Of a stretch of 64,000 bases of DNA, positions 3,656 to 40,807 are shown in pieces. Source of the DNA: Eukaryota sp. TZLM1-RC. Lineage: Eukaryota > Protista > Metamonada: BaSk clade. The stretch covers positions 628,159 to 692,158 of the forward strand of contig JAUPSS010000011.1 in NCBI GenBank assembly GCA_040285825.1, in the 5' to 3' direction. Positions within the stretch are counted from its first letter, which is position 1. Every line of letters starts with the position of its first letter. The notes beneath the pieces are model-generated. The model was not told the origin of the DNA, did no database searches, and was given only the letters and a program-made list of their open reading frames with translations. A program made the translations under genes and the position numbers.

Positions 3656-5611
3656 ATGTCAGACACCCCCTCTGTATCACGTGTATTCACTCGGTCTTGT
3701 GCACTTAACTCGCTGCTGACCCCTGCAGCGGTGCAACAAATTCGGACTGACCTTCCAGTGGTCACCGAGATTTGTCATGAAGCTTCTTTATTACTTCAAT
3801 CTTTTCTTCTAAATTTTCCGTTGGCATCAAGAGCTTTAGTGGAACAGGATGTATGGTATCTGTTTATGACCGTCATCACCACTGGTTCTTTTCCAAAGCC
3901 TTCCACATCTAAAGGCCAACGCCAATTACTCCATATCTTTTACAATGGATTTCTTCCTGAATGCCCACAAGACAGGTCTCTTGTTTCTGTGTGGGAAAAT
4001 TCTTTAGTGCCTTACAGAAATTCATTCAATCTTTTCCTCAATGATTGGCTGCAGTCCCAGAACTGTAATTTTATCAATAGAAAAGGGCTTTCTTCTTATC
4101 TTGCCTGTCGTGCTCGTCAATTGGCCTCCAACGTTAAGACATGTTTACCCAAAATTTGTCAATCCTGGACAAAAAACTTTATTCGTGCTCATTGTAGAGC
4201 CCTGAATAAAACAAATGTCTTTGCAAATAATATTCTTTCACTTTTGCCAGATGAACTACTAGCCCAACCCGAGGAAGTAGTAGTTGATTCTGTTCTTGAA
4301 TACCTCATCAATTTCAATTTGAATAATTCAAGAGAAAGATTTTTTTTATTGAATGCATGTAGGTTTATCTTGAATCTCTTTCAAAGATTTCCTACCACTG
4401 CCTCCCTACTGTCCTCACATGATAAAATCACTTTTCATCAAAGGAAATTAGTGAGCTTTTTCTCTTCAATCTTAAAATTTCACAATACTTACTCACTTTC
4501 TTTTCTCATATGCATTGCTGGAAGAAATTTAGAATAATACCTTTAGCTTCCCATAAAGGTTCTAAATTTATTGAGGTACCTTCACAAATTTTCCACTCTG
4601 TGAAAAAATTTCCAATTATTGAAGGATCATCTTCCAAAACAAAGTTCATCAAAAATACATGTCTGAAACGAATATTCAAACAATGTCCTTACCAAAAATT
4701 CAATATCAACAGAAAAAGTTTGAAAAATAGATTTAACAAAATTTTATTGAAAACTAATGGTAATGAACTGCTTTTGACCTTTGAAGGTAAAAATAATGAC
4801 TCAGAAAACACAGATGAGCTGGATGAACCACCGAAAAAGAAAAGAAGATCAAGAAATGAAATGAAAAGTGACCCTAATGCCAACAAAACCAGAGAAACAC
4901 AGTTGAAGGGTACTAAAAAAATGCCCCGTCGAAGACGTAGACATCCAGTCGAAATTTTACCTGAAAGGCCCCTTATCGGCGTTGATCTTGGCCAATCAAG
5001 ATTATGTGGTTACTTCTTAAATGACAATCAATGTGGAGTTATCCCTTGTCCAACTGGCAGGAGGTACAGGACAAAACCTTCACCCAGTAAACACTCTCCC
5101 AACCAATATTCCGTTCAAAATTTCAACCAATATTTGAACCATTGGAATTTGGTCAGGAGGAAAGTGTATTTGGAAAGTAATCGCCAGAAATGGAAAATAA
5201 TTAAATTTGATAACCGCAGACGAAAAGAGAGACGGTTCAGAGAGACTCTCAACAAATTTCAAAGGCTGGCTGGACATCCTGAAAAACTCTATCTTGCTGT
5301 GGGTTCTGCTAATTTCCCTTCTCATTGCCGAAAAGTCAATCGATATGGATCAGCAAGGGCTTTCAGAAAATGGTTGTGTTATCAAAAGGACGTGAAGCAC
5401 TTGTCAACCAGTGAATTTAATACAAGCAAAATGTCAAGTTGTTGCATGGCCGAGAATATTCAAGCAGGCTCATGGCAGATGCGTATTTGTACTGAGTGTC
5501 AAATAGTATATGACAGAGATATTTCCGCTGCAAAAAAATATTCAAATTAAGAAGAAAGCGGAATTGTGGCCGGAAAGATACATTTGCCCAGATGCTCTGC
5601 TGAGGAGATGA
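3656..5611 (+). CDS. Fanzor1-type RNA-guided nuclease (TnpB family), split by two frameshifts
   Basis: N-terminus 'SCALNSLL...VTEICHEASLLL', 'FRIIPL', RuvC-I 'LIGVDLG', RuvC-II 'LAVGSANF' with the shifted Glu in 'SEFNTSKMSSCC', Zn finger/RuvC-III 'CTECQIVYDRDISAA'. One frameshift lies between ~4425 and 4537. Removing one A from the A7 run at 5532-5538 gives a typical end, 'AAKNIQ...WPERYICPDALLRR*', stopping at 5611. Confidence 0.85.
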
Positions 5612-7856: not shown

Positions 7857-8114
7857 TCATTCATTTAAACCTCCAACAACCTTGGCTCTCTGTAGGTATA
7901 CTGGTCTATCTCCGCCATTTACGTGAGCCTCCATCACTACAAACATATTCAGCGAAGCATTTCGATCTCTATTCCACATATTTTCGCATGATTTACACAT
8001 AATAAGCCCGTGACGAATAGACATCTTATGCCTCTTCCATGGCCTTGTAGTGCTTTTAATGGCACGGAAGAAAACATCTGTGGTCCTTGTACGGATTACC
8101 ACTAAGGACGCCAA
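7857..8114 (-). pseudogene. C-terminal remnant of a Fanzor1 nuclease
   Basis: 'RPWKR..RHGLIMCKSCENMWNRDRNASLNM...GGDRPVYLQR': Zn finger, RuvC-III NRD and terminal RP.YL.R motif. Confidence 0.85.
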
Positions 8115-9370: not shown

Positions 9371-9431
9371 CCATATGGGAAATTCCCAAAAATATACGAT
9401 CAATTTTCGTGTGGAATAATTACAAAAACTA

Positions 9432-11690
9432 TCAACTACACAGATACTGAGGCCTTTCATTACCACTCATTCTGGCTTCAGCAATTGCAAACATATTCAG
9501 ACAAGCCAGCCTATTTCTATTGAAAAGCTTTGTTCAGCCCTTGTTACCGAGTTTACAACTCTCACTGTTACAAGCTAATAAACCATGACATGTAGTAACA
9601 GGAGTCTTTTCTCTTCTATAGAATCTGGGATTTGTTACTCTCAAAAACGTAGTAACCTTTTCAAAACAAACAGGACATTTTGCTGAAGTAAAAGCTTCAT
9701 TAATCATCAATACTTCAAATCCATTCCTTTTCAGAAATTGAATCCATCCAATTCCACGAGTAGGCCTTTGATGTTTTAAATTCTTGGAACCTTTTTTACT
9801 ATAATCACCCATTAGAATTAAAGTGTCTTTTGGATTGCATAACTGCTGGACAAGGTTTTTTAACAACCAACTTTCAGTCTTTTGCTTGTGAATGAAAGCT
9901 TGCATTTTATGAGTGCTCCACAAGCCAAAACTGTAAAAGTCAATTGTCAAAAAACTTGCCGAAGTTTGGCAACCACAAAGTTGGAAAAATCTATAAAAGT
10001 TGCTGAATTGGCAGCAAACGTGAATAATTCGGTGTTGGCATCTTCAATTGTCATTTCGTTAGACTCTATCATTTGGTTCCTATCGGAACCTACCTCAGTA
10101 TACTTTGTCGACCATCGTTTCTGTTTTTCATTCATCCTACTTTTCAAAGACCAGGACATCTGAGTCATTCTCAACCATTTGTACTTCTTGTCTTGATTCA
10201 TCACCCGACTATTTCTTTGCTGTTCAGTTTCATGTTCAGGCACCATGGCTAGTTCTTCATCAGTCTTTTTGCTGCCAAAATACAATAAGTCACGTTTTCC
10301 AGGATCACAAACAACAATTCGTTTGTCTTGAAAAGCATCAACATCAACATCATGAATATATAAATCAGAAATACTAGCCTTGTTGTCTGGCTTACATTTC
10401 TGACCTTGTAAATCCCGACGAACAAATTCTACTGCAATATTAAATCCATCTGTGTGTATAATGTTGTTGAATTTATAGCTCTTCTGTTTGAACATTGGTT
10501 GATTTAAATCGAGAATATTAGACCAAAAGTCAAATTGCTCAGGTGGTTTCAATTTCGTAATTTGGGCTAATGTATTGGACATTTTCAGCGTCTGTGTAGA
10601 TGATAAATCATCAATACATGTTTGTCTAATAATTCTCCATATTGTTCTTGTATCAATGGGAAAATATCCAGGGCCTACAGTGGTTGAAACAGGAGAAATA
10701 TGATACGGTTTCTTCTCTTTCTACTGGAGATATATTGGGCAATTGTAATTGCTGGTTTTAGGAATATTTGCGGATCTTTATCAACAGCGTCTGCAAGAAA
10801 ATGATTATCCACTGGAAATATATTATCAACTAAATTCTCGTCAATGACCAAATTCTCAATTTGGCAAGTAAAAGGCTCAATAAGACCTTCAAATATGTCT
10901 CTAAGTTCATTATTTGTTATATCATGTTGTTCACATAAATCGAAAAGTTCATCATTCAGAAGGACTCTGAAATATTTTCAGGATGATGAAACAAAGAACT
11001 CAAGGAATCTCTATCATCAACTAAAAACAAGTTTTTGAATTGACGAAGCCTAAATCTATATAGTGAAATAATTGTAGATAATCGCGTTGAGTATCCACCC
11101 AGCTTGTGCATTTCTGCTAACACACTTTCCACATCTACTTTGTCAAAGTAAACATTAATAAATCGATTGATTTGTTTTTCATAATTTAGTTTCAAATTAT
11201 TCTCAAAATTGGCAAACATTACCGGGGCCATATACTGAGGTGGTCTACTGAAGCCATCAGTTGGAAATCGTGGAAAAAACTCAGGCCTTTATCTCAAATG
11301 GCCTACATAACTTATGGTTTTGTTCAACTTTTGTTGTTCAAAGGTGGTCGATAATCTATAATCTTCTTCACCATAATCAAAGTTTTCAAAATCCTCTGGA
11401 AGTACACTTTTTGGTTTCATCATTTCTTGCCCATAATACTCAGCTGAAATATAACAAATTCTGGCCATTAATGATTCATATAATTGGGCAGATATTCGTG
11501 GTAATGACAAATTACGTTCAAAACAAGACTGTAAATACAGCTTTAAGCAACATGTGATGTGAATACGTAACTGTTGAAATTTTAAAGCAGTTTCTCTCAA
11601 TTTGAGTACCACATTTGAATGTTTGACCATTGAGTTGACGGTTGCTCGAATGGTTTTATAAGATGATAAAATAAATTTGTCTTTCTGAAA
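9432..11690 (-). pseudogene. Fanzor1 nuclease body of the exonuclease-Fanzor fusion gene (frameshifts and stops)
   Basis: N-terminus 'YKTIRATVNSMVK..LRETALK..HITCCLKLYL', 'ANFENNLKLNY', 'IHTDGFNIAV', RuvC-I 'IVVCDPGKRDLLY', 'LMGDYSK..PTRGIG', 'INEAFTSAKCPVC', 'CHGLLAC', then past an in-frame TGA 'FNRNRLACLNM..GNERPQYLCS*' ending at 9432. Confidence 0.9.
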
Positions 11691-11699
11691 CAGCCCAAA

Positions 11700-12474
11700 A
11701 AGTTTCAGACAAAGGATACAATCATGAAGCCCATATTGAATCGAATTTCGTATAAGAGGAGAAGTAGCTAAACAATCAATTGGCAAAATATGGGAAAATT
11801 CTTGATGAAGTTTGATTTTCTTTTCATTTATCATTTTATATGCCAGATTGCCTAATCCATGTCGTTAGGGTATTTTTATGAATTTTTTGGCAAAAACCAA
11901 AGTATCTAAAAGAACAAAGCTATTTTCCCTGATGACAACTTCTCTCCATCTCGGTGAAAGTTGATTGAGTACATCAATTGCTGTATCATCTGGAACAGTG
12001 GGAAATGGTAAATCAAAATAATTTAATCTATTTTTTAAAACCTATAAATCAAACTGCATTAAGTTTTGATTAAGAAAACAATGGGGTTGATAATTACCAA
12101 TAATGTTTAAAAACCTACGAAGCAAGGCTTTTTCGTCAGAGAAAATTTCTGCCTGAACATCCATATCAATGTCTGGTAATGTAATTTGAGGACTCATCCT
12201 CAACATAAGTGAATATTTACTCTCCAAAAAGAAATTATGGCGATCAAATTTACCAATAACAATCGAAATTAAAAAAACTTTTTGATCAGAAATTTGCTCA
12301 CCCATTTGCTCATCAGTTTTCTTTTTCAAAAGATTTGCACCCACTTTTCTCCTTTTGTCGGTTAATCTCGTCAGGAGGGAGAAATTGGCCATCTTGACTT
12401 TGATAAAGATGACCATCCTGATAGGTTTCAAGATCAAAGCACATAACAGTGGGAAAATTTTCATTTGAGGTCAT
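11700..12474 (-). pseudogene. DNA polymerase B-type DEDDy 3'-5' exonuclease domain, in frame with the Fanzor N-terminus
   Basis: ExoI 'VMCFDLETY' (12424-12438), 'FSDEKALLRRFLNII..YQP', ExoII 'NQNLMQFDL*VLKNRL' (~12045-12070), 'LLDTLVFAKK..HGLGNLAYKMINEKK', ExoIII 'IQYGLHDCILCLKLF' (11721-11735). ExoIII and the Fanzor start share ORF 11289-11834. Confidence 0.8.
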
Positions 12475-12731
12475 TCATTTGAATTGAATCAAAGGATTAG
12501 GCTTGAATCCACTAAGACTTGGCTCAGTTTTTCCAACCATACTCGGTTTCCATGGTTTGTTTGTCAAAATCTTCCTGTTCTCGATATTCAACATTGTATT
12601 CTCAATACAAATTTCTCGGTTCAGTGCTTTTTGTTGTTTTTTAGCTTACGCTTTGATGTTTGTTGGTCAAAAATCGCATTTCTAATATTTTTTTATGGAG
12701 GAGTTGATTTATAATTAGATCTTCTCTTTCT

Positions 12732-12779
12732 GGGACCAGGATTTGCTTCAACATCTCCATACATTGTTAAATCAACAGT
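12732..12779 (-). other. 2A ribosomal-skip (StopGo) peptide TVDLTMYGDVEANPG|P
   Basis: Exact D(V/I)ExNPGP consensus (GDVEANPGP at 12732-12758) preceded by 'DLT..', upstream of and co-oriented with the exonuclease-Fanzor frame. Confidence 0.8.
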
Positions 12780-14394
12780 AAATGGGTTTGTTGATAGAAG
12801 ATGTTGGCAGCTAATGGATTGAAAAGATAAATTATAAACATAATTATCAAACTCAACATTATCAAAATAACAATTTTAGACACAACATCCCACATCTAAA
12901 GTGTAAGAATCTAAACCACAAAAATGAACAAACTCAAAAACATCAAAATAACAATATAAAACAAAACATATTTAGAAGAAGCATCTCACATCTTGGCTCT
13001 GACCTTCCGTTTATTCCTGTAAATCAGGATGACTGTTCCCGACTGAGGAGTTCGGGAAGAAGTACTCTGCTGTTCTTTGAAGAACAGGTTGAAGGAGGAG
13101 GTGCGAACTGAGTCCGTAACCTCGTTATCCTTTTTCTCGTTTTGCTGCATGATGTTAAAAAGAATGGGAAGAGTCAAGATAATCTCTCTGTCTGACACGA
13201 TGTCTGATATGCTGATTGCAATTTCAAATTGATTGCTAATTTCCACTATGGTATCAAATGCCTATCCAATGTATCTCTAGTGGTCATCAGCATCAGCTCG
13301 TTACCCTCTAGCTCTTCTGGTCGTTGTTACTCCGTCTAAACTCTATGTTTTTTCCCAGTTTCCTTCTCCTTCCTTTACCTCTTGTTGTCTTCCCATTCAG
13401 CTATCTCAACAATTCTCCCTTCCCCTCTCCCTCTGTGTTTTGAGGGGACCTAAACAATTGCTTGTTTGGCCCAGAATCAACAAAATTCATAAGTGAGTAG
13501 ATGGTCTATTGATTTCAGACGTCTCAAATTTACATGGACCACAATGAGGTTGAGTCCCCACACCTGGACTTAGTTGGATGTTTCACTTACAAAATCAGAG
13601 AACATAACAGAGACTGATCATCTATCTGATTGGAGAGACAGTAGGTGAGTAACCCTTTCAATTTTCAGCAAAAGAAGTTGAATAGTTTTAAGTTTTTGGT
13701 TCAAAACTCCAGTTTTTGGAAAACCAGTAATTTCTCCAATGATATTGATAACTATGTGAGTAAAAATTAAATCATTATAAGAAAAAGGAATCCAAATGTC
13801 TACTGTCAATCAACTTCCTCAATTTAGAGCTCTGTGAAGTAGGACAACATAGGATCAAAGAATTTGACCAAAGCTGCATTCATTGGTGGAAAAATTTTGA
13901 TTTTGAATTTTGTAGAAGATATCCTTTTGCCAAAAATCTTCTTGAAACAACAAAGTCTATTCATGGATAACTGATTTGGTTCACCAGTGATGGTTATCTT
14001 GATGTATCCTCAATTCTCTTTGTTTAAATAAATACATCACAAATTTCCATCTATCTTTGACATCGATTGCTGATTGTTTAAAGTTACACATAATTTTATG
14101 CTTCGAATAAACAGTTTGAAAATTACACTGAAATTGGCAAATGCTGATAGGATTTGTTCACGTATTAATTTGTCAGGACGTGCCTCCTGAAAACTGTAAA
14201 TTTGTAAATTATCAATTCAGATAAAAAACAAATTCTCATATTCAAAGTTCAAGCAGAATCAGTTAAGAGAGTGCCATAAACTTGAGGATTTGTTGTTACT
14301 AAGGCAGAAGAAGTACTATCACACATATCTTGTAAAAGATTTGCAAAAGCGGGATTCTTTTACCATTCTTCTTACATTCCATTCTTCTTCCATT

Positions 14395-17484: not shown

Positions 17485-19293
17485 CTACTTTTTCCCCTCC
17501 ATTCGACGGTCTTTTCTAGCTCTTCTGCGAGGTTGTTTGCGAGTAGGTTGACTAGTTGGGGGTTGTGACTTATTAGTCTGGAGGAAGGCTCGGTAGGCCT
17601 TGGTGTTCTTAATGCGGTCGACAGGCTCAGTGCCTCGTACATCTCCAGCGTATACGACTTGACACTCGTTGCCATCCTGGCTGAGAACTTCTAATAGAAG
17701 ATGTTCCTCAGTATAACCTGAGGCCACGATACGATAAAACTCATCATCAGTGGGTTTGTCAGAATGGTACAATTTGCATTGTGAAATGCTAGCCTTAGAT
17801 TCGACACCTGTGATTAAATTCTTTAATAATAAAGTTGATTTACTAGGTTTGTCGATGACCAGATATGGGCCCAGATAATTCCCATGTAATTTGGAGTTAC
17901 TAGATGATTTGAGGATTAAACATCCAACTTCGAATAGCAGGTTACTCGTGCTTGGCTTCTCCTCTGGCGATTTCGATGTTTGGGTGATTTCTGCTTTTTC
18001 TCCTTTTTCTTTTAGTCGATTAAATTTAGATTGGATATCCAGAATGAAAGGAACCTCAGTGGTAGCCTTTTCGATGGTGGAAAAAATTGATAAAGGGTCA
18101 GCTCTGGGACTGACGTCTGACCCAAACATAAGCTCGAATGGACTGAAACCTGTGACAGAGCTCTTAGACGAATTCGTTAAGAGTTGTACGTAAGGCATGT
18201 ATTCTGACCAGTTGTCATAGGCGTTAAAATCGATTAGGAGCTTCCTAAGATTTTGTAAAATAACTCCATGACGTCGTTCAACTAGGCCATTTGATTGACT
18301 GAAATTTGGAATACTGTTCGTCATGTTGATAGACAGGAATTCGCACAGTAATTTAAACACGTTGTTGGCGAATTCTGGGCCGTTGTCACTGTGAATGCTG
18401 TAAGGTATACCAAAGATTGTGCACACACTCCAAATCAAAGCGTCGGCTGTCAGCCTTGCGTTTAATTCTTTGAGGGGCACGAGGACTGTATACCGAGTGA
18501 AACTGTCCACGAAAACTAAGATGTATTTATTGGCCTCTTGATCTGGAGGAAGAGGACCAATGGTATCCACGTTCAATCTCGCGAAGGGTTTGTCAGCCCA
18601 GAGAGATCCGGTGGAAGGAGTGATAGATTTGGGGACAGGTGCCGTTTTCTGACATAATGGACAAGAACGCACGTGGTTCTTCATATCATCAGTCATACTG
18701 GGCCAGTAGTAGTCGCTAGAGGATAGCCTGCGTAAACTCTCAGACATACTAGGATGACCGCTTGATACATAACCATGTATGATCAAGAGCGTGTTGTTGA
18801 TGAGTGATGACGGGATGATGATCTTGCCTGATTCGTTAACGTAGAGGTCAAGATGATTGACGGAACAGTTATTAAATGAACGTTCGTGAGCTGCAACAGC
18901 TTGTCTTTGCTCTGAACGGATTCTACTCAACCAAGGATCGAACATGGGGGTTGCAGATGCACATTTCTCTTTTAGAATGAGGATTTTGTGGGTATCCCGA
19001 AGGTCGTCTGGGTCTGGAAGAGCAGAGTCGTCTGATGGATCATAGTTTCTGATATAATAGATTGGGTGAAACGGTTCATAGGTGGTCTCGCTCGCTGATG
19101 AACGAGTATTGCCTGTGTTGATTGTGTTTATGCGTACAGGATCGGTCGTTGGGACCTGTCTGGATAGCATGTCTGCCCAGTAGTTGTCTTCCCCCGAGGT
19201 GTGTACCAACTCGAAGTCGAACTCACTGAGTATTGGTAACCAACGTGTGACAATTCGATTCTTATCAGGGGCTGTTACCAGATATGAGAGCAA
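17485..19293 (-). CDS. Pol C-terminus: end of RNase H, integrase (HHCC, DDE), GPY motif and degenerate chromodomain-like tail
   Basis: 'H..G..N.WADMLSR', 'HGYVSSGH...CPLC', 'VDTIGPLP', 'VDSFTRY', 'HSDNGPEF', 'SNGLVERRH', 'YLGPY'. Confidence 0.92.
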   Translation of the reverse strand: MLSYLVTAPDKNRIVTRWLPILSEFDFELVHTSGEDNYWADMLSRQVPTTDPVRINTINTGNTRSSASETTYEPFHPIYYIRNYDPSDDSALPDPDDLRDTHKILILKEKCASATPMFDPWLSRIRSEQRQAVAAHERSFNNCSVNHLDLYVNESGKIIIPSSLINNTLLIIHGYVSSGHPSMSESLRRLSSSDYYWPSMTDDMKNHVRSCPLCQKTAPVPKSITPSTGSLWADKPFARLNVDTIGPLPPDQEANKYILVFVDSFTRYTVLVPLKELNARLTADALIWSVCTIFGIPYSIHSDNGPEFANNVFKLLCEFLSINMTNSIPNFSQSNGLVERRHGVILQNLRKLLIDFNAYDNWSEYMPYVQLLTNSSKSSVTGFSPFELMFGSDVSPRADPLSIFSTIEKATTEVPFILDIQSKFNRLKEKGEKAEITQTSKSPEEKPSTSNLLFEVGCLILKSSSNSKLHGNYLGPYLVIDKPSKSTLLLKNLITGVESKASISQCKLYHSDKPTDDEFYRIVASGYTEEHLLLEVLSQDGNECQVVYAGDVRGTEPVDRIKNTKAYRAFLQTNKSQPPTSQPTRKQPRRRARKDRRMEGKK

Positions 19294-19631
19294 TGTCCAT
19301 TGGATCTGGATCCATTGCTGGACAAGGATCCATTGCTATTGTGATCTGTGAATATCGTGAGCTTCCTGCTTTTGAGGTAACTCTCGATGCATGATTTTGT
19401 TAGGATGAGAAGTATAGCGTAAAGCTCTTTCTGCATCGTTGACCAATTCTTTTGGGAATTGGAGAGAATCCTGCTAAAGAAACTGATAGGTCTGACCTTA
19501 GGGTCAATGAGAGGAGTGCCATTGTGTTCACAAGGATCATATTCTTCCCAAATGACGCCGCCAATAGCAATGTCTGATGCGTCACAACTGATAGGGACAC
19601 AGTTATCTGCTGGGGGTAAACTCAATGGCAT
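19275..19631 (-). CDS. RNase H fragment of Pol (frameshifted)
   Basis: 'CDASDIAIGGV', 'PISFFSR.L...QKNWSTMQKELYAI', 'IFTDH'. Confidence 0.9.
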   Translation of the reverse strand: MPLSLPPADNCVPISCDASDIAIGGVIWEEYDPCEHNGTPLIDPKVRPISFFSRILSNSQKNWSTMQKELYAILLILTKSCIESYLKSRKLTIFTDHNSNGSLSSNGSRSNGHCSHIW

Positions 19632-19679
19632 ATTCTCCTTTACGAGTTGCTTGATCTTGTTGAAGCGAAGTTCATGATC

Positions 19680-21443
19680 TCAGGTCCACTCGATACGGCG
19701 GTGGTTTCCTCTAATAAGCTCGATGATAGGAGATAAGATTTCGGATACCGAAGGTAGCCAGTTTCTAATGTAGTTGATGGATCCTACAAAACTTCTGACG
19801 TCATTCACTGTCTTGGGAGCTGGAAGCTCGACTTGTCCAGTTAGTCGTGAGGGATCGATTTGGTGTGTACCGTTGACGAAGATACTACCAAGAATCTTGA
19901 TTTCATGATCTTTAGACTTGAAATGGCATTTTGGTAGGCCAAGGCTGACCCGCTTCTCTTTAGCGCGGAAGAGGACGGCTTTGAGCCTGTCGATGAATTG
20001 AGGAAGGGTATTACCTATGATAATGATTTCGTCGATGTAGATAAACACGCCTTCGATGCTAAAGATGTTGGACATTACATTTTGAAACACTGCCGGGACG
20101 TTCTTGAGACCGAAACATGCCCTGTTGAAGCTGATACTGCGACCAGGAATGCTGAGGGTGGTTTTCTCGATGTCTCTTTCGTTGATCTTGAGCTGCCAAT
20201 ATGCTTTTGGGAGATCAAGTGTTCCAATGTAATTGGCTTGAGATAAGAACTCTAATACATCAGAGATCTTGATTGGAGCAATGGAGATAGTGTTTGCATT
20301 GACTCCATTCGGACCACTGAAGTCGCCTGTAAGACGTGGTTTCCGATGATCAGGATAAACTACAAGAACGACTGGGGAGCTGAATCTACCGTTGGATTCT
20401 GTGGCGAAACCAGATTCGATTAACTCATCGAATATTTGGTTGGCGATTTTGAGTCGTTCAGGGTTTAACCTGCGAGGTGGACGATAAACAACAGTGTCTT
20501 CATCGTAGAAATCGATGTCCATGGGGTTACAGTCGATGCCGTCTTCATGGGGTTTCAACGTGAAAACATCTTTGAACTCTTCAAGAGTTGCGAGGAGCTG
20601 TTGATTTTCTGATTGATTGTTGAGCTTTATTTGACAACCTGACGAGTTGACGTGATCTTCGAATGTTTTTGACACCTTGAGGTCAGATATCTGTGAAATT
20701 CTGTGGTCAAACTCAGATTCAGGTAACATTAGTGTTCTGTGAAGCTCATCGAGATGAATGTGTACCCTGTCGTTGTTCATGAGGCTGAGTTCATATAGGA
20801 TGTATATTCCTATAATTAGAGTGTTGTTGCCTGGAACGATTGGTAAGGATTTGGTAAGATGCACAACTTTGGCAATGCTACCGACGTTGAAGGATAGGAT
20901 TCCTTTGGTATTGTAGTCAGAGTTTGATGGTTCTTTGTTAACACCAATGAATTTGAAAGATTCAGTGCAGTGTTCCATCTTGCATTTTGTAGATAGGTCT
21001 TTCGAGATGACGGATATGGATGCTCCGCTATCAATAAGGCCAGATACCTTTATGTTATTAATCTGCAACCAGAGTTCAATAAACGTGGGACAATTAATAG
21101 ATTTATTGGCACAAACAGAAGACAAACTAAAAATTCTATTGGTATGCGAAGATTCAGGGTCACATGTGCTCAAAGGATTTAAGAGGCGTTTGGGAGGAGA
21201 ATGCGACGATGTCAAAAAACGATTGTTTGAGAGAGTCGGTAGTATGATCTGAAGATGGATTGACGTTGGTAGATTGTGGATTCTTGATGTTAATTGTATT
21301 GATCCTGTAACTACGAGAACGTTTACTATCACTACTACTATAACTATCCAAACTACGGCGCTTATTCTTAGGAATTGCAGATCTCTTGCAATGTGGATGT
21401 AGGCATTCCTTGACAGAATGACCTGGCTCTTTGCAAAATCCAT
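19680..21443 (-). CDS. Pol N-terminus: aspartic protease and reverse transcriptase
   Basis: 'LIDSGAS', 'SSPVVLV', 'LDLPKAYWQ', 'FGLKNVPAVFQ', 'YIDEII' (YxDD changed to YIDE). Confidence 0.92.
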   Translation of the reverse strand: MDFAKSQVILSRNAYIHIARDLQFLRISAVVWIVIVVVIVNVLVVTGSIQLTSRIHNLPTSIHLQIILPTLSNNRFLTSSHSPPKRLLNPLSTCDPESSHTNRIFSLSSVCANKSINCPTFIELWLQINNIKVSGLIDSGASISVISKDLSTKCKMEHCTESFKFIGVNKEPSNSDYNTKGILSFNVGSIAKVVHLTKSLPIVPGNNTLIIGIYILYELSLMNNDRVHIHLDELHRTLMLPESEFDHRISQISDLKVSKTFEDHVNSSGCQIKLNNQSENQQLLATLEEFKDVFTLKPHEDGIDCNPMDIDFYDEDTVVYRPPRRLNPERLKIANQIFDELIESGFATESNGRFSSPVVLVVYPDHRKPRLTGDFSGPNGVNANTISIAPIKISDVLEFLSQANYIGTLDLPKAYWQLKINERDIEKTTLSIPGRSISFNRACFGLKNVPAVFQNVMSNIFSIEGVFIYIDEIIIIGNTLPQFIDRLKAVLFRAKEKRVSLGLPKCHFKSKDHEIKILGSIFVNGTHQIDPSRLTGQVELPAPKTVNDVRSFVGSINYIRNWLPSVSEILSPIIELIRGNHRRIEWT

Positions 21444-23082: not shown

Positions 23083-25690
23083 ATGCGTAATTTGCTTTTT
23101 AAGTGTGTTCACAATAGCCACTTAGCTACTGTCAGAGGAACATCCTTCCTTAAATATTTTTTACTGTGCAGGAAGTTAGAGCTTGATTTTATGAATGGTT
23201 GTGATTACTATGCATTTCAAATTGAAGAAACAATTTCCCCAATCGAAATTCCAAATTCAATGCATGAATACGACTATGATGCCTTTTCTATTTTAATGAT
23301 TTCTCAATTCAATAACCCGATTTAAGCTCCATAATTTTCAAAGAATCAATTGAATTAGTTGCAAGGAGGAAGTATGTTGTAAAACCAAATAACGAAAAGA
23401 TTCCAGATTTGTAACTATCAAAGATTGAAGCTAAAAAAGTAAATAAAGATATGGATATTTCGAATTGCACTCTGAAACAGAAAATCAGTTATAATTTATT
23501 GAATTATTATATCCACTTTTACAAAATCTTGATACTGAGCTTGGTCAAAGAAGGATCAATTTCCAGATAATACATCAATGAATCGAGTTTCACACTATAC
23601 GGCCAAACAACTTGCCATTAATTATGGAAATAATCTCCGCAAACACTTTCATCGATACGTTTTGCGTTGGCTAAACATTATCACCTTGAAGTAGTTCAGA
23701 CTAGAACAAATTCAGGAAAATCATTTGAGAAAGAATTATTGACTAAACTCAAAAAAGTCAGGTGAAGCCATTATCCGTATGAACTTTGATGAACTTCCTA
23801 TCAATGGTCACATTGTTTTTCCCTTTCCCCAGTCAGAGTTGACTTCGAAGTTTTTTGCTTATGTGAAACATTGCTGAATTCCAACTTTTATTTAATGTAA
23901 AAATCTTTATTATACTCAATAAGCCAAGCCACTGAATTTTCTCTCTCATGCTATAGTTGTTAACAGAACCATTCAATCATTCTGTTCCCAGGATGGCAAA
24001 CCTTTGTCAGTCAGTAATCCTTTTGCATTGACAACTACATTGATTCCACAGAATATAAGACTTGATACTCATTGGGTCAATGAAAGATTGGGCAATTTCA
24101 AAGGGAGAGCAAATGACATAAGGTCATCAGTTTTTACCGAAATGCTAACTGATAAGGCATTAGATTCTTACAAACGTGAGACTAAAGGTTGCTCTCAATT
24201 GTAACAGACAGGATTGCTTGTTCAGTCGTCTTAATTCGTAAAGACCAGGTTGATGAAAATGGAAATGTTTTCAAAAATTTTACTTCCAAGACGTTAGCGC
24301 ACCCAGAGCGATGCATACATTCCTTGTCTGAAAATGTCGAAAAGGTGAAGTTAAAAGATAAAAGAATAGTTGCCATTGACCCTAACGAGTACGATTTAAT
24401 GCACTGTGTTTCTCCAAATCCTACTGTAACTATTACCCCAGAACAAATTTCACAAAATGTGTTTTATAAAAAAGGACAACTTCCAGAAATTAGAAGCAAA
24501 AAACACAAATGCATTAAAAGAAGAAAAAAACAATTACAAAATCTATAAACCTATTCAAACTCTGACTCTGATTATGTACGGCTGAAACTCAAACACTGGA
24601 GGAACACGTTCAAATATACTGCCGGTGAACACCAATTTGACAGAAAAAGTACCAAATATCGTTCAACGGAAAAAAGGAAAAAAGAAAATTGGAAAGTACA
24701 ATTACCTCATGGTGATTACTCAAGTCAGGATATTGGAAATCAATTTTCTTTATTTGTATCAAACAGACAACAAAAATCTTGTTTCAGTCAACATTTTGGT
24801 CATTACATCAAGGAATTTGAGCAATGCAATGTTCATAAATATACTTTTTACCAAGATATATGGTTCAGAAAAAGAAAATTTCAAACGTATTCGAATAATC
24901 AAAGAAGTGAAAAAAACATGTTGAAAAGATTCAAATTGACCTTTGGCTCCCCTGAAAACGTAGTTACTGGTTATGGTGACTGGAGCTCGAAAGAAAAAAC
25001 AAGGAAGGGAAAAAAGACAACCATAAGAGGAACCGAAATTCGCAAACTATTAAGAAGATTTGGTCATCGAATTTTCCTAGTTGATGAATATAGAACGAGT
25101 ATATCTTGTCCTAGTTGTGCTGCCAAGGGAAATTTTGGAGAATGTGTCAATGATTCTTGTATTAAAGTGTTAGGTCCTAAGTGCAAACGACAACTAAAAA
25201 GAAAAGCAAACAGTTAAAACAAGAAATTGATTTATTTAATCAAAACAATCCTACTAGAAAAAGAGATTTTCAACAAGAATGGGGTGAGCAGAAGGATTCA
25301 CTAGAAGAAAAAGCAAAATCCACATCGTGGGGTTTAGTGAAGTGTCAGACGTGCAACACGTATTGGAATAGAGACTTCAACTGTGCCATAAATAAATATT
25401 CCATTATAACATCTGCAATCAACGGTAAAGGTAGACCAAAAACTCAAACAAAAAATTTCGAAAATGGATCATCTACTTCACAGAGAGATCAGAAAAAGAA
25501 GACTGCTGAGAAGGACAAAAAACCGAAAAGATTTGGTAAATGTCGCGGAAAAGGCCACAACAGAAGAAACTGTCCATCGCAAGTTCCTGAAACTAGCATA
25601 TCCTCATCGGGCACTAAAAGAAGACAAGGAGGAACTAAAAAGAGAGTAATCAAGACGATCTCTGTAGAAGAAAAAATCAGTCCATCTTAA
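23083..25690 (+). pseudogene. Degraded Fanzor1 nuclease with C-terminal zinc-knuckle tail
   Basis: N-terminus 'RNLLFKCVHNSHLATVRGTSFLKYFLL', 'SIVTDRIACSVVL', RuvC-I 'IVAIDPNEYDL', 'GYGDWS', 'LVDEYRTSISCPSC', 'WGLVKCQTCNTYWNRDFNCAIN..GKGRP'. Many frameshifts. Confidence 0.88.
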
Positions 25691-26396: not shown

Positions 26397-29300
26397 TTAA
26401 ATTATTTCTGAAATAATGCCAAACTCATTCGAATTTGAGATTAATAAATTCTTGAATTTTGATAAACTATCATTACCATCATTAAACAAATCAACTAATT
26501 TTAACATAGATTGATTTGAAGGAATGAAATCAACCAATTTAATAAAGTTTTGAAATTCAGTATTTGATTGAACAGAATCAATCAAATTGATTGACAGTGA
26601 CAACAATTGTATGAAACAATTTAAAATTTTATTTAAAAAGTTCTGATCAAATGAATCCAATGGAGCACGACCAACCAAAGCAGAAACGTTAATCAAAAGA
26701 TTAATCAAATTTGGATTTGATTGATTGAAGTTTGATTGAGAGCTAATCACATTTGTATCAATTGGTAAACAATATTCCAACAAATTCACCAAATAATACT
26801 GATCAGTACCCATCAAGCAATGAGTTGAAAAAGGAAACAAATTAACATTTGATTGATTAAAAAGAGTTTGAAACCTGGAAATATTAGAAAAGCAGTAAAT
26901 CAAATCAAATGCAATCAAATCTAGGGTATTTTGATTGAATTCCGAGTAATTGGTGGTTAAAAATTTTGACAAAAATTGATCAATAAACATTGGTGAAGGT
27001 GAATTAATGGAAAAAAGAGTAGAAAAAATCGAAAACTCCTTAATAAAACCCATTTTCAAATATTTGATAAATGTATCTGAAATTTTTAACAAAAAAACTT
27101 CCACTGCAGTTTCTGTTGACGAAAAGTACTTGATCAATAAATCAATCAAATTTTGATAGAAGTCAACAACCAGGAAGGTGGGAGTAGACTGGTTTTCAGT
27201 TGGATCAGTAAAAGTACTAATAACAAAGTTGAGTAACCTCACAGTAAATGATTCTGGAATTTGACAATAATCAATCAATCCTATCAAATTGATTGCCCAT
27301 GAACCGAGAGTTAAGTTCATAAAATTTTGGTTGACAAGTTCAAAATTCTGAGCCAAAGTTGCAACAACAATTGAAAATAAATTAGAATTTTGAACTGCGT
27401 TAACATTGTTTGAGAATACATTGACTAAACAATTAACAAAAAGCAAATGGTTTTTTCTAGAAATCAAGTTCAAGCATAAAGTCCAAAATTCAAAGACTTC
27501 AGGTGACCGGAAAGTACCAAAATTGACTGAATTTATCAATAATAAATAAATTGAACTAACTTCTGTATTTGGTTTGGTAAAATCGTCCATCAAGAGGTCA
27601 ACTGACTGCCAAATTGATAATCCCCAGGTGGTGACAATTTTGGCTAGCGATGAATAAAATAGACTAGAAAGTCGTTGCCTAAGGGATACTTTGCAAAGGA
27701 ATAGTAACACAGGAATAGCTGACGTCATTGCTAGATCAATACTGGGTAGGTCAATAAGAAAATTGAGCCAATGGAGTGTCAAATTTTCAACAAAGAGATC
27801 AAAATTTGGTCCAAAATTGACATCAGACAAAACTTGAAAAAATTGAGTGATGAAAGAAACTATATTAATTAGATTTAAATCAGACTTGAATGAAGTTTGC
27901 TGAAGATTTTCTGGGAATAATTTCAAGCAAAAAACGATCAAAGCTTTTGCAAAAGCACGAGAAGTAATTAATTTTGGAAATAAGTCAAAAAGAATTGACA
28001 AGGATGACTTCAAGTGTTCAGCAATAATATTTAAATCAAAAAATCCAAGAATTTCAATCAAACAAATGGATAAGGAAGCCATAACATCAGTAGATAATTT
28101 CTTTTCCTTAAAAAGGACGATGGTGTTGTTGAAAATACTGAGAAAAAACTCAAAAAAGGAATCGGGAAGCAAAACATGACTTTGAGATGATAACAAAGTC
28201 ACTAATCGGGAAAAAAAGGATAGATCATAATAAACGTGGTCCATAACGTCATGGTCGCTCAACAATCTTGACGGGCTAAGATTTTGATCAAAAGAAAAAA
28301 GAAAACACGACTTAATTAGATTTTCAATGTAAAGGAAGTTATTACCAATATTGTATTGAGAGAAAAAGACCACCAACGATGATAAAGTATTGTCTGGTGG
28401 AAAATTAAGAAACTTACAAATGTCACTTAAATGCAAAGACGGACTTTGCAAAAATTCAGAATTTAAAAGATGACTAAATAAATTCGAAAGTGCTAAACCA
28501 TTCAGAATGACAATTGAAACACCAAAGCTATCAAATACTGATTTGAAAACCATACCAATAGTAGTTGATTGTTCGGTCATTTCCAAATCAAATCTGGCTA
28601 AAGAGGTGGATAGAAAAGCCGGTGAAGTTCTCGGTAACGTAATACTGTATTCAGGATCAGAAACTTGACTGTCAGAATGATTGATTAACAGAAAATTGAT
28701 GATTGACAGTTTATAAAAGGACTCTGACAAAAACTTTCCAATTTCAAAGCAATTTCGATGATGTGCGAATTCAAGCACAATTTGAGGACTTAATTTACAA
28801 ACAAAGGAAATCAGTAAAAGAAATGAATCATCTTTTTCGCAACAATTATCAAAGAGTAATTCGAGACAAAAGTCGACGAATCTTTTGACTGATCCATTGG
28901 AGGGATTCAAATCAAACAGACACTTCGGAATTAATACAAGAAGAGAAGAAGGAAACGCTGAAACCTTATCTAAGTATCCATATAAAGATCTATCAAGAGA
29001 TAAAAGGTCAAATAACGGCGAGTCAAAGTCAAGGGTACCTTCAGACCCTTCTTTTCCTTTTTCTACCTTTTCTTTTTCTTCTTTTTCTTTTTTGTGCTCA
29101 GAATTCCAGAAAAAGTCAGATTTTGAAATATTGTAGTTAGTAGTAATGTGATCAACTTCAAAAAGGGAAGAAGCACCAGATACTACAGAACCAATTGAAC
29201 AAGATCTAGATCTACAATCTATACTGGAAACTGATGACTCATCAGGGTCAGAAAATGATTGACTTGTTTCAGGAAAAGAATGTGCAAGATTTAATTCGCA

Positions 29301-31061
29301 ATTAAATTGTGAATTTCCCTTAAATGGAGATAGAAGTGTTTCTTTGGTTGAAACTAATTCTGAATTGGATCTTTGACAAAAAAACTTGGAAACAGAAACG
29401 ACAACATCCAACAAGACACAAGATTCAAGCTCCAGTAAATAATTATTTTGAGGGCCAACAAAGATTAGCAAAGTATTAATTAACCATGATAGAGATGTTA
29501 GTAAAGGTAAAAATGAGGGGAGATCTAAACCTGAATTCGATTGGATTAAAGATTCAAATTTGACTAAAAAACAAACCAAAACACATAGGAAATCGGAAAC
29601 CCAATCACAAAACTGATTATCTTCACTATCATTTTGATTTGATTGGTAGCTTCTCAAGATCATACCGTTAATTCCACAGAAAAATAAAGCAAGATTAAGT
29701 GCTGAAACATTATTTGAATTACTTAAACAGTGCTTTAAAAGTCCCGAAATTAATTTTAAATCAATTAATTGATGGAGGTCCAAAAACTCGGAAAGAATAA
29801 CAAAATGGTCAATTACTGTTACAATAAGAGAAGAGTCTCTATGGCTGAGTGATTTTAACATTGATGAGTAAAATACTTGAGGAAAAGAATTGGAAACTTT
29901 CTTGAATAAATCTTTTGTATTAGAAACTAAATGTAAATTGACAACATTAATTGAGTGATTATTTAACGACAAGTTTCTGACACTACCAATACAAATAAGG
30001 AAAAGTTCAAAAAATTCAGCTAATATTAAAGAATCAATATCTGAAAATTGAAAAAGAAACGTACATAATCTGCTTAGATGACAACTAAACACAATCATTT
30101 GGTCCAATCCATCAATTTTGATTGATTGACTATCATTGACACAGCAACTGCCACGTAACCAGTCAGAAAACCCTTGAAACAGCTCATAATCTCTAACTAA
30201 CAAGTGACTCAATGAATGAAAAAGTTTATGATAGACCTTTTCTGAAAATGCAGTTGAAGGCAACCTTCGAAAAAGGTCAAAAAGGCAAATAATACATGAT
30301 TGGTGGCAGTTAATAACTGGGAAGAGTACACAGTCAATCAAATCATTAACGACAGCAAGTGAATGCTTTAATGCATAGTCAAAAACTAAAGGAAACAAAG
30401 AACTAAATCGTTTTTCAAAATTTAAATTAAATTTACTACTATTTTCAAGATAAACTCCAACTATTAATATAAAAAGATCAACTATTTTAAAAGATTTGGT
30501 TATTATTAAGTTACTTTTAAAATGATTTTCAAAGCAAAAAAGAATATTATCAAGTGTTATAAAAGTAAAGTCTTCAAAACGAGTCAGTAAATTGACCCAT
30601 GTTATGGAGCTACTCTTTTCACCTGATGAGCTATCTGCCAACTCATGACAAGACTCAGCCATTATTGCTGAGTAAACAGCCAGAGGAAGAGAAAGATCAA
30701 AAAAATCATCCTTTCCTTTCGGTGTAAAAAGCTCCATAAAAAAGCTTGGGCAGCTACTTTCAATTAAAAGACAAAGAGTTGTGTCAAGTGAAGTAATCAT
30801 TGACTGAGTGAACAACTTTGAGTTTGGTGAGTTAAGGCATAGACCTCTTACAACAGTCTGTACAACCGATGCTACAGCTGACACCGAAGCAGAGTCAGTG
30901 GTAAGGGTTCGTTGAAGATAGAAGCAAAGGTGTGAGGTGAAAAGTTGTTGGTCAGATTCAATGGATGTTACTGACTGTAGAAGAGTGAGCAACTCTTGGC
31001 AATGTGAAGCATTGTACCTGTGTTTTCTAAGATGTGTGAAGATATTCTTCAAAGACTTCAT
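26397..31061 (-). CDS. Large hypothetical protein (1554 aa), Leu/Phe/Ser-rich, possibly alpha-solenoid
   Basis: Uninterrupted 4.7-kb ORF with no recognisable catalytic motif. Confidence 0.8.
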   Translation of the reverse strand: MKSLKNIFTHLRKHRYNASHCQELLTLLQSVTSIESDQQLFTSHLCFYLQRTLTTDSASVSAVASVVQTVVRGLCLNSPNSKLFTQSMITSLDTTLCLLIESSCPSFFMELFTPKGKDDFFDLSLPLAVYSAIMAESCHELADSSSGEKSSSITWVNLLTRFEDFTFITLDNILFCFENHFKSNLIITKSFKIVDLFILIVGVYLENSSKFNLNFEKRFSSLFPLVFDYALKHSLAVVNDLIDCVLFPVINCHQSCIICLFDLFRRLPSTAFSEKVYHKLFHSLSHLLVRDYELFQGFSDWLRGSCCVNDSQSIKIDGLDQMIVFSCHLSRLCTFLFQFSDIDSLILAEFFELFLICIGSVRNLSLNNHSINVVNLHLVSNTKDLFKKVSNSFPQVFYSSMLKSLSHRDSSLIVTVIDHFVILSEFLDLHQLIDLKLISGLLKHCLSNSNNVSALNLALFFCGINGMILRSYQSNQNDSEDNQFCDWVSDFLCVLVCFLVKFESLIQSNSGLDLPSFLPLLTSLSWLINTLLIFVGPQNNYLLELESCVLLDVVVSVSKFFCQRSNSELVSTKETLLSPFKGNSQFNCELNLAHSFPETSQSFSDPDESSVSSIDCRSRSCSIGSVVSGASSLFEVDHITTNYNISKSDFFWNSEHKKEKEEKEKVEKGKEGSEGTLDFDSPLFDLLSLDRSLYGYLDKVSAFPSSLLVLIPKCLFDLNPSNGSVKRFVDFCLELLFDNCCEKDDSFLLLISFVCKLSPQIVLEFAHHRNCFEIGKFLSESFYKLSIINFLLINHSDSQVSDPEYSITLPRTSPAFLSTSLARFDLEMTEQSTTIGMVFKSVFDSFGVSIVILNGLALSNLFSHLLNSEFLQSPSLHLSDICKFLNFPPDNTLSSLVVFFSQYNIGNNFLYIENLIKSCFLFSFDQNLSPSRLLSDHDVMDHVYYDLSFFSRLVTLLSSQSHVLLPDSFFEFFLSIFNNTIVLFKEKKLSTDVMASLSICLIEILGFFDLNIIAEHLKSSLSILFDLFPKLITSRAFAKALIVFCLKLFPENLQQTSFKSDLNLINIVSFITQFFQVLSDVNFGPNFDLFVENLTLHWLNFLIDLPSIDLAMTSAIPVLLFLCKVSLRQRLSSLFYSSLAKIVTTWGLSIWQSVDLLMDDFTKPNTEVSSIYLLLINSVNFGTFRSPEVFEFWTLCLNLISRKNHLLFVNCLVNVFSNNVNAVQNSNLFSIVVATLAQNFELVNQNFMNLTLGSWAINLIGLIDYCQIPESFTVRLLNFVISTFTDPTENQSTPTFLVVDFYQNLIDLLIKYFSSTETAVEVFLLKISDTFIKYLKMGFIKEFSIFSTLFSINSPSPMFIDQFLSKFLTTNYSEFNQNTLDLIAFDLIYCFSNISRFQTLFNQSNVNLFPFSTHCLMGTDQYYLVNLLEYCLPIDTNVISSQSNFNQSNPNLINLLINVSALVGRAPLDSFDQNFLNKILNCFIQLLSLSINLIDSVQSNTEFQNFIKLVDFIPSNQSMLKLVDLFNDGNDSLSKFKNLLISNSNEFGIISEII

Positions 31062-39860: not shown

Positions 39861-40807
39861 TATGGAGTGTATGATTTTAGTGTATGATGTCATGCCACAT
39901 TTACACTTATGGTCATGTCATTGCTTGGAGATTAATTACATCATTTGTCAATCTTTTGCAACATTTACATCAATCTATACAAGATTAATTGCCATTGAAA
40001 AAATCAAAACTGAGTGCGCATTTTACAATTCAAGCTTCCAAGTTCTTAAATAGTACCACTTGTCTTTCATGACATTTGGTGTGTATTCAAACAATGTTGG
40101 ATGAGGTCTTACAATGATAAACAAATATTGTTTTTTTAATCAACATAAATTCAATGTATATCCAAGAAACAATTTTAAAGCTAAAACTATGGGGCTCTTT
40201 TTTCCATTTGAAAAACTCCATTTATGAGGAAAAACTCGACACTTGACAACAAACCTTTAAATTGTAATTTACATATAAGTTGCTTCACACACCTTTGTAT
40301 GATATTGTTTCTTCACACTTCTTGTGAAAACGTGCCTATGCATATTTGATACAATGCAGGTTTTATACATGAGTGAATGATTCATGTCTTCTGCTGTAAT
40401 AGCAATCCTGAAGACAATGGTGTAAGCAGTAAAGATGATGTATGTATTGAAAAGAATAATATACAGGAAAAGTGTATTACGAAAGAATCTACATCAAGAA
40501 AAGCGTACAGCGGTGTAGACATCAAGCCAATCAATGAACAATTGACATCAAAAGATTGATTGAGTCAAACGAAACCCTTGAGAGACCCTATAGGTACAAA
40601 GGTTTGCGGTATACAAATGTAGAATGCGCTAGGCAAGTCTGCTGTGGAAGAAATCGTATTGTCTACTTTTGTACCTCCAATAATCATGACACTAAGGATA
40701 TGTAGTGTTTGATGTTACTTACTCATCTTAAAGTTGAGTAACCAAAGAAGAAAGACCACAGAATGTCGCTCAGGCTGGAAAACAAGATTTTTGGTGTGGT
40801 TCCAATG

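Follow-up and report, generated by a model that had tools for sequence, protein, structure and literature searches.

A recurrent fusion of a polymerase-type 3'-5' exonuclease with a Fanzor1 nuclease predicted from Skoliomonas genomes

The 64,000-nucleotide stretch of contig JAUPSS010000011.1 analysed here (assembly GCA_040285825.1, positions 628,159 to 692,158; hereafter the window) comes from Eukaryota sp. TZLM1-RC, the type isolate of Skoliomonas litria, a free-living soda-lake metamonad (PMC11603281). On its minus strand the window carries a decayed element whose single open reading frame (ORF) is predicted to have encoded a family-B-polymerase-type DEDDy 3'-5' exonuclease joined to a complete RNA-guided nuclease of the Fanzor1 type. 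An earlier note, made from the letters of this DNA, had proposed a natural fusion of endonuclease and exonuclease, and the proposal is borne out by a recurrent gene family with many intact single ORFs at differing loci. The best overall explanation, held with high confidence, is that the window contains a dead copy of a single-ORF Fanzor1 element with a natural exonuclease fusion, which would have worked through a mechanism of the kind outlined below.

The junction between the two halves is not peculiar to the window. In L001, an S. litria paralogue that is 92.6% identical to window positions 12582-9376 over 3209 nucleotides (nt), a single frame of 1003 codons, interrupted by just two stops, covers the three exonuclease motifs (ExoI, ExoII and ExoIII) and the Fanzor. 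The flanks of L001 and of three further loci with the same junction (L003, L004 and L005) are mutually unrelated. Homology with the window starts at internal points, at 12582 in L001, 12391 in L004 and 12145 in L003, and L001, L003 and L005 have a common 3' end at 9373-9376. In the genome of Skoliomonas sp. TZLM3-RCL, many exonuclease-Fanzor genes of 940-1846 amino acid residues (aa) are intact, and they form at least six subfamilies that are 25-57% identical. In P0006 (1281 aa), for example, a full Fanzor comes after the Pfam domain DNA_pol_B_exo1 (PF03104; residues 369-504); other intact members, with several copies each, are P0026 (1846 aa), P0027 (940 aa), P0028 (1194 aa) and P0022 (1096 aa). 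Altogether, copies at different loci with differing flanks occur in at least three Skoliomonas genomes. Recurrence at loci that are not shared, together with the many intact single ORFs, identifies a real gene family and not a chance insertion into a polB gene. An artefact of gene models is ruled out, since three 3585-nt ORFs run uninterrupted through genomic DNA at different loci. The deposited proteins of the family are labelled 'hypothetical protein'.

Selection can be gauged in both halves from L006, L007 and L008, three intact 1194-aa copies at separate loci that are about 97% identical. The ratio of non-synonymous to synonymous substitution rates (dN/dS) is 0.15-0.22 in the exonuclease part, where it is based on small counts (6-9 synonymous versus 4-7 non-synonymous changes), and 0.15-0.21 in the Fanzor part. 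At the sequence level, both halves are thus under purifying selection. Both halves are also retained in all six subfamilies, at identities of 25-49% for the exonuclease and 26-57% for the Fanzor; since the two have diverged to a similar degree, the fusion is older than the split of the subfamilies. As a separate observation on the three copies, their ORFs (L006/L007/L008:4001-7585) are identical or almost so over the first ~550 nt, which encode leader, 2A and linker, but differ in the Fanzor half by a synonymous divergence of up to 0.12-0.155, a pattern that suggests recombination or gene conversion between copies.

These results bear directly on the possibility that a decaying polB gene, of the host or of a virus, merely happened to receive a Fanzor element in frame. 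As such a juxtaposition would have it, the copy in the window is a pseudogene whose domain scores are weak, and transposon debris is abundant in the region. However, the probability of such an accident is practically negligible, because the same junction is found at the four paralogous loci despite their unrelated flanks and, in two other Skoliomonas species, in dozens of genes, no copy has a polymerase domain after the exonuclease, and both halves are under purifying selection. The earlier note had envisaged that other copies might lack the exonuclease and that a remnant of a host polB gene might account for it; paralogues and relatives share the junction instead, and so the fusion stands.

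Outside Skoliomonas the fusion was not encountered, its distribution there being gauged from a single HMMER search, made without a profile, and from word-indexed searches. Run against 1.84 billion cluster representatives, the HMMER search with the 191-aa junction piece (11292-11864) as query gave 15 matches. Those that span ExoIII and the Fanzor N-terminus come only from the Skoliomonas genomes TZLM1-RC, TZLM3-RCL and GEM-RC1, and the five matches from other organisms begin only past ExoIII and have no exonuclease domain. The word-indexed protein searches with the exonuclease and Fanzor parts returned almost nothing but members of the family, plus two Fanzors without an exonuclease, and are a poor guide to organisms other than Skoliomonas.

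The N-terminal domain is, by sequence and by model, a predicted DEDDy 3'-5' exonuclease of the type found in family-B polymerases. In the minus-strand translation of the window, FDLET, NLMQFD and YGLHD provide the ExoI, ExoII and ExoIII motifs with their DEDDy residues, at or near the places where the earlier note had located them. Within 11700-12474, which had been read as a DEDD exonuclease, the ExoII piece matches PF03104 with an E-value of 2e-4 (21.3 bits, just below the 23-bit cut-off), and the exonuclease domains of the six subfamilies match the window from 12374 to 11532 in tblastn. The intact relatives score far higher against the same family and cut-off (E 2e-13 to 2e-16, 42-61 bits, with a maximum of 60.7). 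A phmmer search of the PDB with the single ExoII piece finds nothing, and a family profile is needed; the profile of the exonuclease half matches Pol delta (6.5e-10) and then herpesvirus polymerase, Pol alpha and Pol epsilon. Since these E-values are less than 100-fold apart, the donor of the domain (host Pol delta, a virus or a stand-alone exonuclease) is not separable by them. The top 50 Foldseek matches of the exonuclease domain model, which has a predicted local distance difference test score (pLDDT) of 75 by itself and about 90 inside the full-length model, are all exonuclease domains of family-B polymerases. A look-up in the ESM Atlas gave PF03104 clusters, stand-alone exonuclease-domain proteins among them.

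The four metal-binding carboxylates of this domain (D4, E6, D126 and D230 in P0027 numbering) do not vary among eight sequences with identities of 26-53%. This invariance is the main obstacle to a reading in which catalysis does not matter and the domain persists for structural reasons, for DNA binding or for the recruitment of partners, for instance by mimicking a replisome surface. Inactive exonuclease folds are indeed retained in Pol zeta and Pol alpha, and the ExoIII Tyr of the family is not strictly conserved, but inactive folds normally lose the carboxylates that are preserved here across distant subfamilies, and a purely non-catalytic role is judged quite unlikely.

The C-terminal half is identified, again from sequence and model, as a predicted Fanzor1. 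The C-terminal piece of the window has weak Pfam and NCBIfam matches to Cas12f1-like_TNB and guided_TnpB, and the family profile of the Fanzor half matches SpuFz1 (5.5e-45), PpFz1 (1.2e-42) and GtFz1 (9e-10) in the PDB. An AlphaFold2 model of P0027 (mean pLDDT 80) matches SpuFz1 in Foldseek with an E-value of 1e-25 and a template modelling (TM) score of 0.74-0.77 normalised to the target. The profile and fold matches uphold the assignment to Fanzor1 that had been made from motifs. The RuvC-I Asp is invariant in the family, and VVCDPGKRD of the window aligns with VIDPNKRD of SpuFz1. The catalytic Glu precedes the TNB zinc finger in the pattern (N/D)E..TS..C..C, window INEAFTSAKCPVC being aligned to SpuFz1 LLDEYKTSSVCPRC, and a GD is present at the canonical site (LMGDY in the window). 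The motifs DPGK, GD, (N/D)E..TS..CP.C and WNRN are retained in the family.

RuvC-III reads WNRN in the family versus WNRD in SpuFz1 and PpFz1. A dead RuvC owing to this Asn was considered and rejected, since GtFz1 carries the same Asn (N658) and is active, and the D606N variant of SpuFz1 is more active than the wild type (PMC11423790). The D-E-N triad predicted for the family is thus a non-canonical but documented variant, as in active GtFz1.

The position of the junction is defined by Fanzor1 proteins from other sources that have no exonuclease. Residues 33-672 of P0034 align with 251-939 of P0027, and residues 13-653 of P0033 with 460-1193 of P0028, so that the C-terminal ~690 aa of the fusion are an end-to-end match for these proteins. 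On the window, P0033 and P0034 align from 11660/11669 down to 9441, with an onset about 17 codons past the ExoIII Asp. Because the alignment starts just past the ExoIII helix, where the junction had been placed before, the exonuclease is joined directly to a complete Fanzor1. The palm, fingers and thumb of a polymerase (PF00136) have no match in any member of the family, which agrees with the earlier observation that no polymerase part follows; with a Fanzor1 after ExoIII, the protein is not a polymerase.

The copy in the window, judged by its sequence, is a pseudogene. A single frame from 12470 to 10959 (504 codons) has three in-frame stops only (12042-12044, 11865-11867 and 11289-11291), which is far below the expectation for a random frame at 34% guanine plus cytosine (GC). 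The first two lie between ExoII and the Fanzor N-terminus, as described earlier. ExoI is in a different frame, and the one frameshift that had been put near 12320 falls somewhere within ~12316-12365. When the nearly intact paralogue is mapped onto the window, the stretch from ExoI to the C-terminus shows four changes of frame and no fewer than four in-frame stops, which agrees with the earlier description of a decayed copy: the exonuclease domain has one frameshift and two in-frame stops, and the Fanzor1 moiety has three frameshifts and at least two stops. Extra stops are present further upstream (12475-12477 and 12693-12695). The window stops are plain nonsense changes of codons that encode Gln, Tyr, Tyr and Ser in L001. 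The stops are substitutions, and some of the indels could be errors of the long-read-based assembly; the sequencing runs found are DNA runs of a single study, and their short-read contigs on the element are short pieces, mostly of 97%-identical paralogues, and neither confirm nor refute the window frameshifts. No second exonuclease-Fanzor copy was found in the 64-kb window by tblastn of window pieces against the window itself.

Table 1. Features of the exonuclease-Fanzor element in the window
Feature	Position	Strand	Basis
Whole decayed exonuclease-Fanzor element, ~4.1 kb	9373-13467	-	blastn against paralogue L005
Conserved non-coding 5' part, ~480 nt	12990-13467	-	91% identical to L005:3956-4425
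Remnant of hydrophobic Cys/Phe-rich repeated leader peptide	12759-12989	-	translation; direct repeat; L005 homologue
2A-like motif GDVEANPGP (DLTMYGDVEANPGP), preceded by DLTMY	12732-12758	-	translation; relatives
Basic linker RKRRSN..., similar to a nuclear localisation signal; stops and frameshift in window copy	12448-12731	-	translation
Predicted family-B-polymerase-type DEDDy 3'-5' exonuclease domain	11670-12447 (inner edge approximate)	-	motifs, PF03104, tblastn
ExoI VMCFDLETY (core FDLET)	12421-12447	-	translation
ExoII NLMQFDL	12045-12065	-	translation
ExoIII YGLHD	11721-11735	-	translation
Predicted complete Fanzor1 moiety (WED/REC/RuvC/TNB)	9435-11669 (upper edge approximate)	-	P0033/P0034 alignment
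YKTIRATVNSMVK	11622-11660	-	translation
RuvC-I VVCDPGKRD (DPGK)	10289-10315	-	translation
LMGDY (GD)	9801-9815	-	translation
INEAFTSAKCPVC (NE..TS..CPVC)	9666-9704	-	translation
RuvC-III FNRNRLACLN (NRN)	9495-9524	-	translation
ERPQYLCS	9435-9458	-	translation
Short 3' tail closing the element, with small terminal hairpin GGGAATTTCCC at ~9378-9388	9373-9434	-	L001 similarity stops at ~9373

The element is longer than the earlier note had it (9432-12474), and a 2A-like motif ahead of the exonuclease had been overlooked. In blastn against L005, window 13467 to 12995 and 12992 to 9373 are matched at 90-91% identity. The outermost 5' part has no long ORF in the window translations and is a candidate promoter or 5' untranslated region. 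The leader remnant contains a direct repeat (12842-12888 and 12923-12969), and a homologous leader at L005:4585-5106 is in frame with the 2A motif; the linker of L005 stays in frame with the 2A motif up to a point about 25 codons ahead of ExoI. GDVEANPGP of the window follows the 2A pattern D(V/I)ExNPGP at the end of a ~20-aa tract, and W(I/K)(R/K)(D/N)L..DGD(V/I)(E/H).NPGP precedes the exonuclease in P0007, P0009, P0023, P0024, P0026, P0028 and P0029 as well as in L005. In four of these TZLM3-RCL proteins (P0009, P0023, P0024 and P0007), His takes the place of the canonical Glu (DVHKNPGP, DIHPNPGP). P0026 has, between the 2A motif and the exonuclease, two stretches matching the Ulp1 protease (peptidase C48; E 5.7e-17), and P0029 has a weak match; neither the window copy nor the P0028 subfamily has the domain. 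The ancestral ORF is accordingly reconstructed as a predicted protein of ~1,200 aa, a correction of the ~1100 aa first proposed, with a leader, a 2A-like peptide, a basic linker, the exonuclease and the Fanzor1 in this order.

The unit of the P0028 subfamily begins 173 nt upstream of the ATG, finishes 67 nt past the stop and is closed by a terminal hairpin, GCTACAG...CTGTAGC. A conserved tail of 60-67 nt with a terminal hairpin is found both in the window and L001 and in the P0028 subfamily, where it is less variable than synonymous sites. The tail is a candidate for the end of the omegaRNA scaffold. Rfam and tRNA scans of the window reported ribosomal DNA (rDNA) only. In two cases (L005:3390-3814 and L001:7302-7592), a different Fanzor remnant lies upstream, and its C-terminal end is ~140-270 nt away from the start of the exonuclease-Fanzor copy, which could reflect nesting in a transposon-rich island or insertion beside the ends of other Fanzors.

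The proposed mechanism joins these parts. The 2A peptide would free the nuclease from the leader or from anything else translated upstream, and the basic linker, acting as a nuclear localisation signal, would carry the protein to the nucleus. There the Fanzor1 with its omegaRNA would cut the target, and the tethered exonuclease would trim the 3' ends of the break, so that simple re-ligation is prevented and short non-homologous 3' tails are removed. Repair would then copy the element from a donor, favouring its retention or spread. Pol delta proofreading clears short non-homologous 3' tails in gene conversion, and by analogy the exonuclease could open the way for this copying. The block to re-ligation is argued by analogy with editing fusions of TREX2 and T5 exonuclease (PMC13370227, PMC12337685). 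Processing of the 3' ends at the guided break is thus the probable task of the tethered exonuclease. The complete scenario, a transposase-free unit that expresses a 2A-released polyprotein (with Ulp1 in some members) and combines guided cutting with an end-conditioning exonuclease so that repair copies the element, is put forward only tentatively, as possible rather than probable.

Several observations weigh against the explanation preferred here. A 3'-5' exonuclease leaves 5' tails, which are not the canonical substrate of recombination, and end processing is one option only. The ExoIII Tyr, kept in most members, is displaced in P0028 and P0007. Convincing terminal inverted repeats or target-site duplications were found in neither of the two subfamilies examined, and neither a second gene nor a transposase was seen in the unit. 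Folding of the 3' regions as RNA gave no signal above shuffled sequences (z -0.17 and -1.34), and the window copy itself is, on its sequence, non-functional.

Given the purifying selection, and given a unit that lacks a transposase, terminal inverted repeats and a target-site duplication, the family might be a domesticated host gene, a guided nuclease-exonuclease serving host DNA metabolism or defence. However, there are dozens of copies per genome, many of them truncated or decayed and at non-syntenic loci, and a single genome contains several subfamilies that have diverged deeply. Mobile elements typically show such a pattern, and domestication is very unlikely.

The exonuclease might instead act on RNA, trimming or maturing the 3' end of the omegaRNA or guide. 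The DEDD superfamily contains RNA 3' trimmers, and a guide at the 3' end of the omegaRNA needs to be defined in some way if there is no terminator. Past about 15 bp, moreover, the guide is unprotected by the protein (PMC11423790). The closest relatives in sequence and fold, however, are all DEDDy proofreading domains of DNA polymerases, and other Fanzor1 proteins function without such a domain, which makes an RNA substrate improbable. Trimming of the omegaRNA and non-catalytic roles are both ranked below processing of DNA ends, on the grounds of the invariant carboxylates and of the nearest relatives, which are domains that proofread DNA.

The remainder of the window is rich in other elements. 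A second, unrelated Fanzor/TnpB-like gene at 3656-5550 (plus strand) is split into two ORFs, 3656-4537 and 4510-5550, the latter with a match to Cas12f1-like_TNB at E 3e-5; it has no tblastn similarity to the exonuclease-Fanzor family at E 1e-2 and no exonuclease match nearby. Fanzor C-terminal and RuvC remnants of other lineages, 23-48% identical to P0033 and P0034, lie at 7881-8069 (minus) and 24198-25456 (plus), which brings the Fanzor-derived loci of the window to at least four. The pol region of a long terminal repeat (LTR) retrotransposon, with protease, reverse transcriptase and integrase (H2C2 and rve) in two long ORFs, occupies 17485-21443 (minus). Two long intact ORFs, of 1554 aa at 26397-31061 (minus) and of 657 aa at 32535-34508 (plus), have no Pfam match at E 0.01. 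A complete 18S-5.8S-28S rDNA unit at 55051-60552 is flanked by tandem repeats of 462-464 bp (97-98% matches) at 40805-44669, 46306-54471 and 60483-64000; these repeats, which are probably the rDNA intergenic spacer, explain the blocks of ~29% GC and GC skew of +0.3 in the composition profile.

Fanzor and TnpB have been described as compact single-function effectors, and the fusion is a new domain architecture among them. The earlier note knew of no described Fanzor with such a fusion, and no paper describing one was found in a full-text literature search, the main Fanzor papers, the first Fanzor survey or the Skoliomonas genome paper; papers beyond those searched may hold one. Selection across deeply diverged subfamilies implies that end processing matters, whether for homing, for the choice of repair pathway or for guide maturation. 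If the proposed mechanism is true, the family would represent an RNA-guided 'cut-and-process' system of natural origin, and the first known case of a guided nuclease that brings its own end-processing enzyme. The 2A leader, with Ulp1 in some relatives, would be a polyprotein expression strategy for which no report in the TnpB family was found. Dozens of 'hypothetical proteins' of this recently described lineage of metamonads can also be given a role.

Compared with the known Fanzor1 proteins (SpuFz1, 8GKH/9CEU; PpFz1, 9CF0; GtFz1, 9CER), the fusion has the same RuvC-I DPG, relocated Glu before the TNB, CxxC...C..C zinc finger and C-terminal helix over an end-to-end alignment, with the RuvC-III Asn of GtFz1. 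In contrast, the described Fanzor1 proteins have no N-terminal exonuclease domain, 2A leader or Ulp1 protease. With the proofreading domains of family-B polymerases (Pol delta, Pol epsilon, herpesvirus UL30) and the stand-alone PolB-exonuclease-like proteins (PF03104/PF10108), the exonuclease half has in common the fold and the ExoI D.E, ExoII N...FD and ExoIII Y...D motifs at comparable spacing. Unlike the family-B polymerases, the fusion is devoid of the polymerase N-terminal domain, palm, fingers and thumb, and the Fanzor follows directly. N-terminal 2A (StopGo) peptides occur in the ORFs of non-LTR retrotransposons and in picornavirus-like polyproteins. The likeness to these systems is the D(V/I)ExNPGP near the N-terminus of a mobile-element ORF, but here the predicted 2A peptide heads the nuclease gene of a DNA element, and some relatives have His for Glu. 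The closest counterparts in design are engineered, namely the T5 exonuclease-Cas12f fusion 'exoCasMINI' (PMC12337685) and TREX2-SpCas9 (PMC13370227), in which an exonuclease is likewise tethered to an RNA-guided nuclease and boosts editing efficiency by processing the cut ends. T5 exonuclease or TREX2 has already been fused to Cas9, Cas12f and Fanzor for efficiency, and the Skoliomonas family provides a natural template for such engineering, an evolution-optimised fusion whose linker, domain order and compact DEDDy domain could be tried out directly. Whereas those fusions are man-made, that of Skoliomonas is natural, ancient and under selection, and is predicted to employ a PolB-type DEDDy domain.

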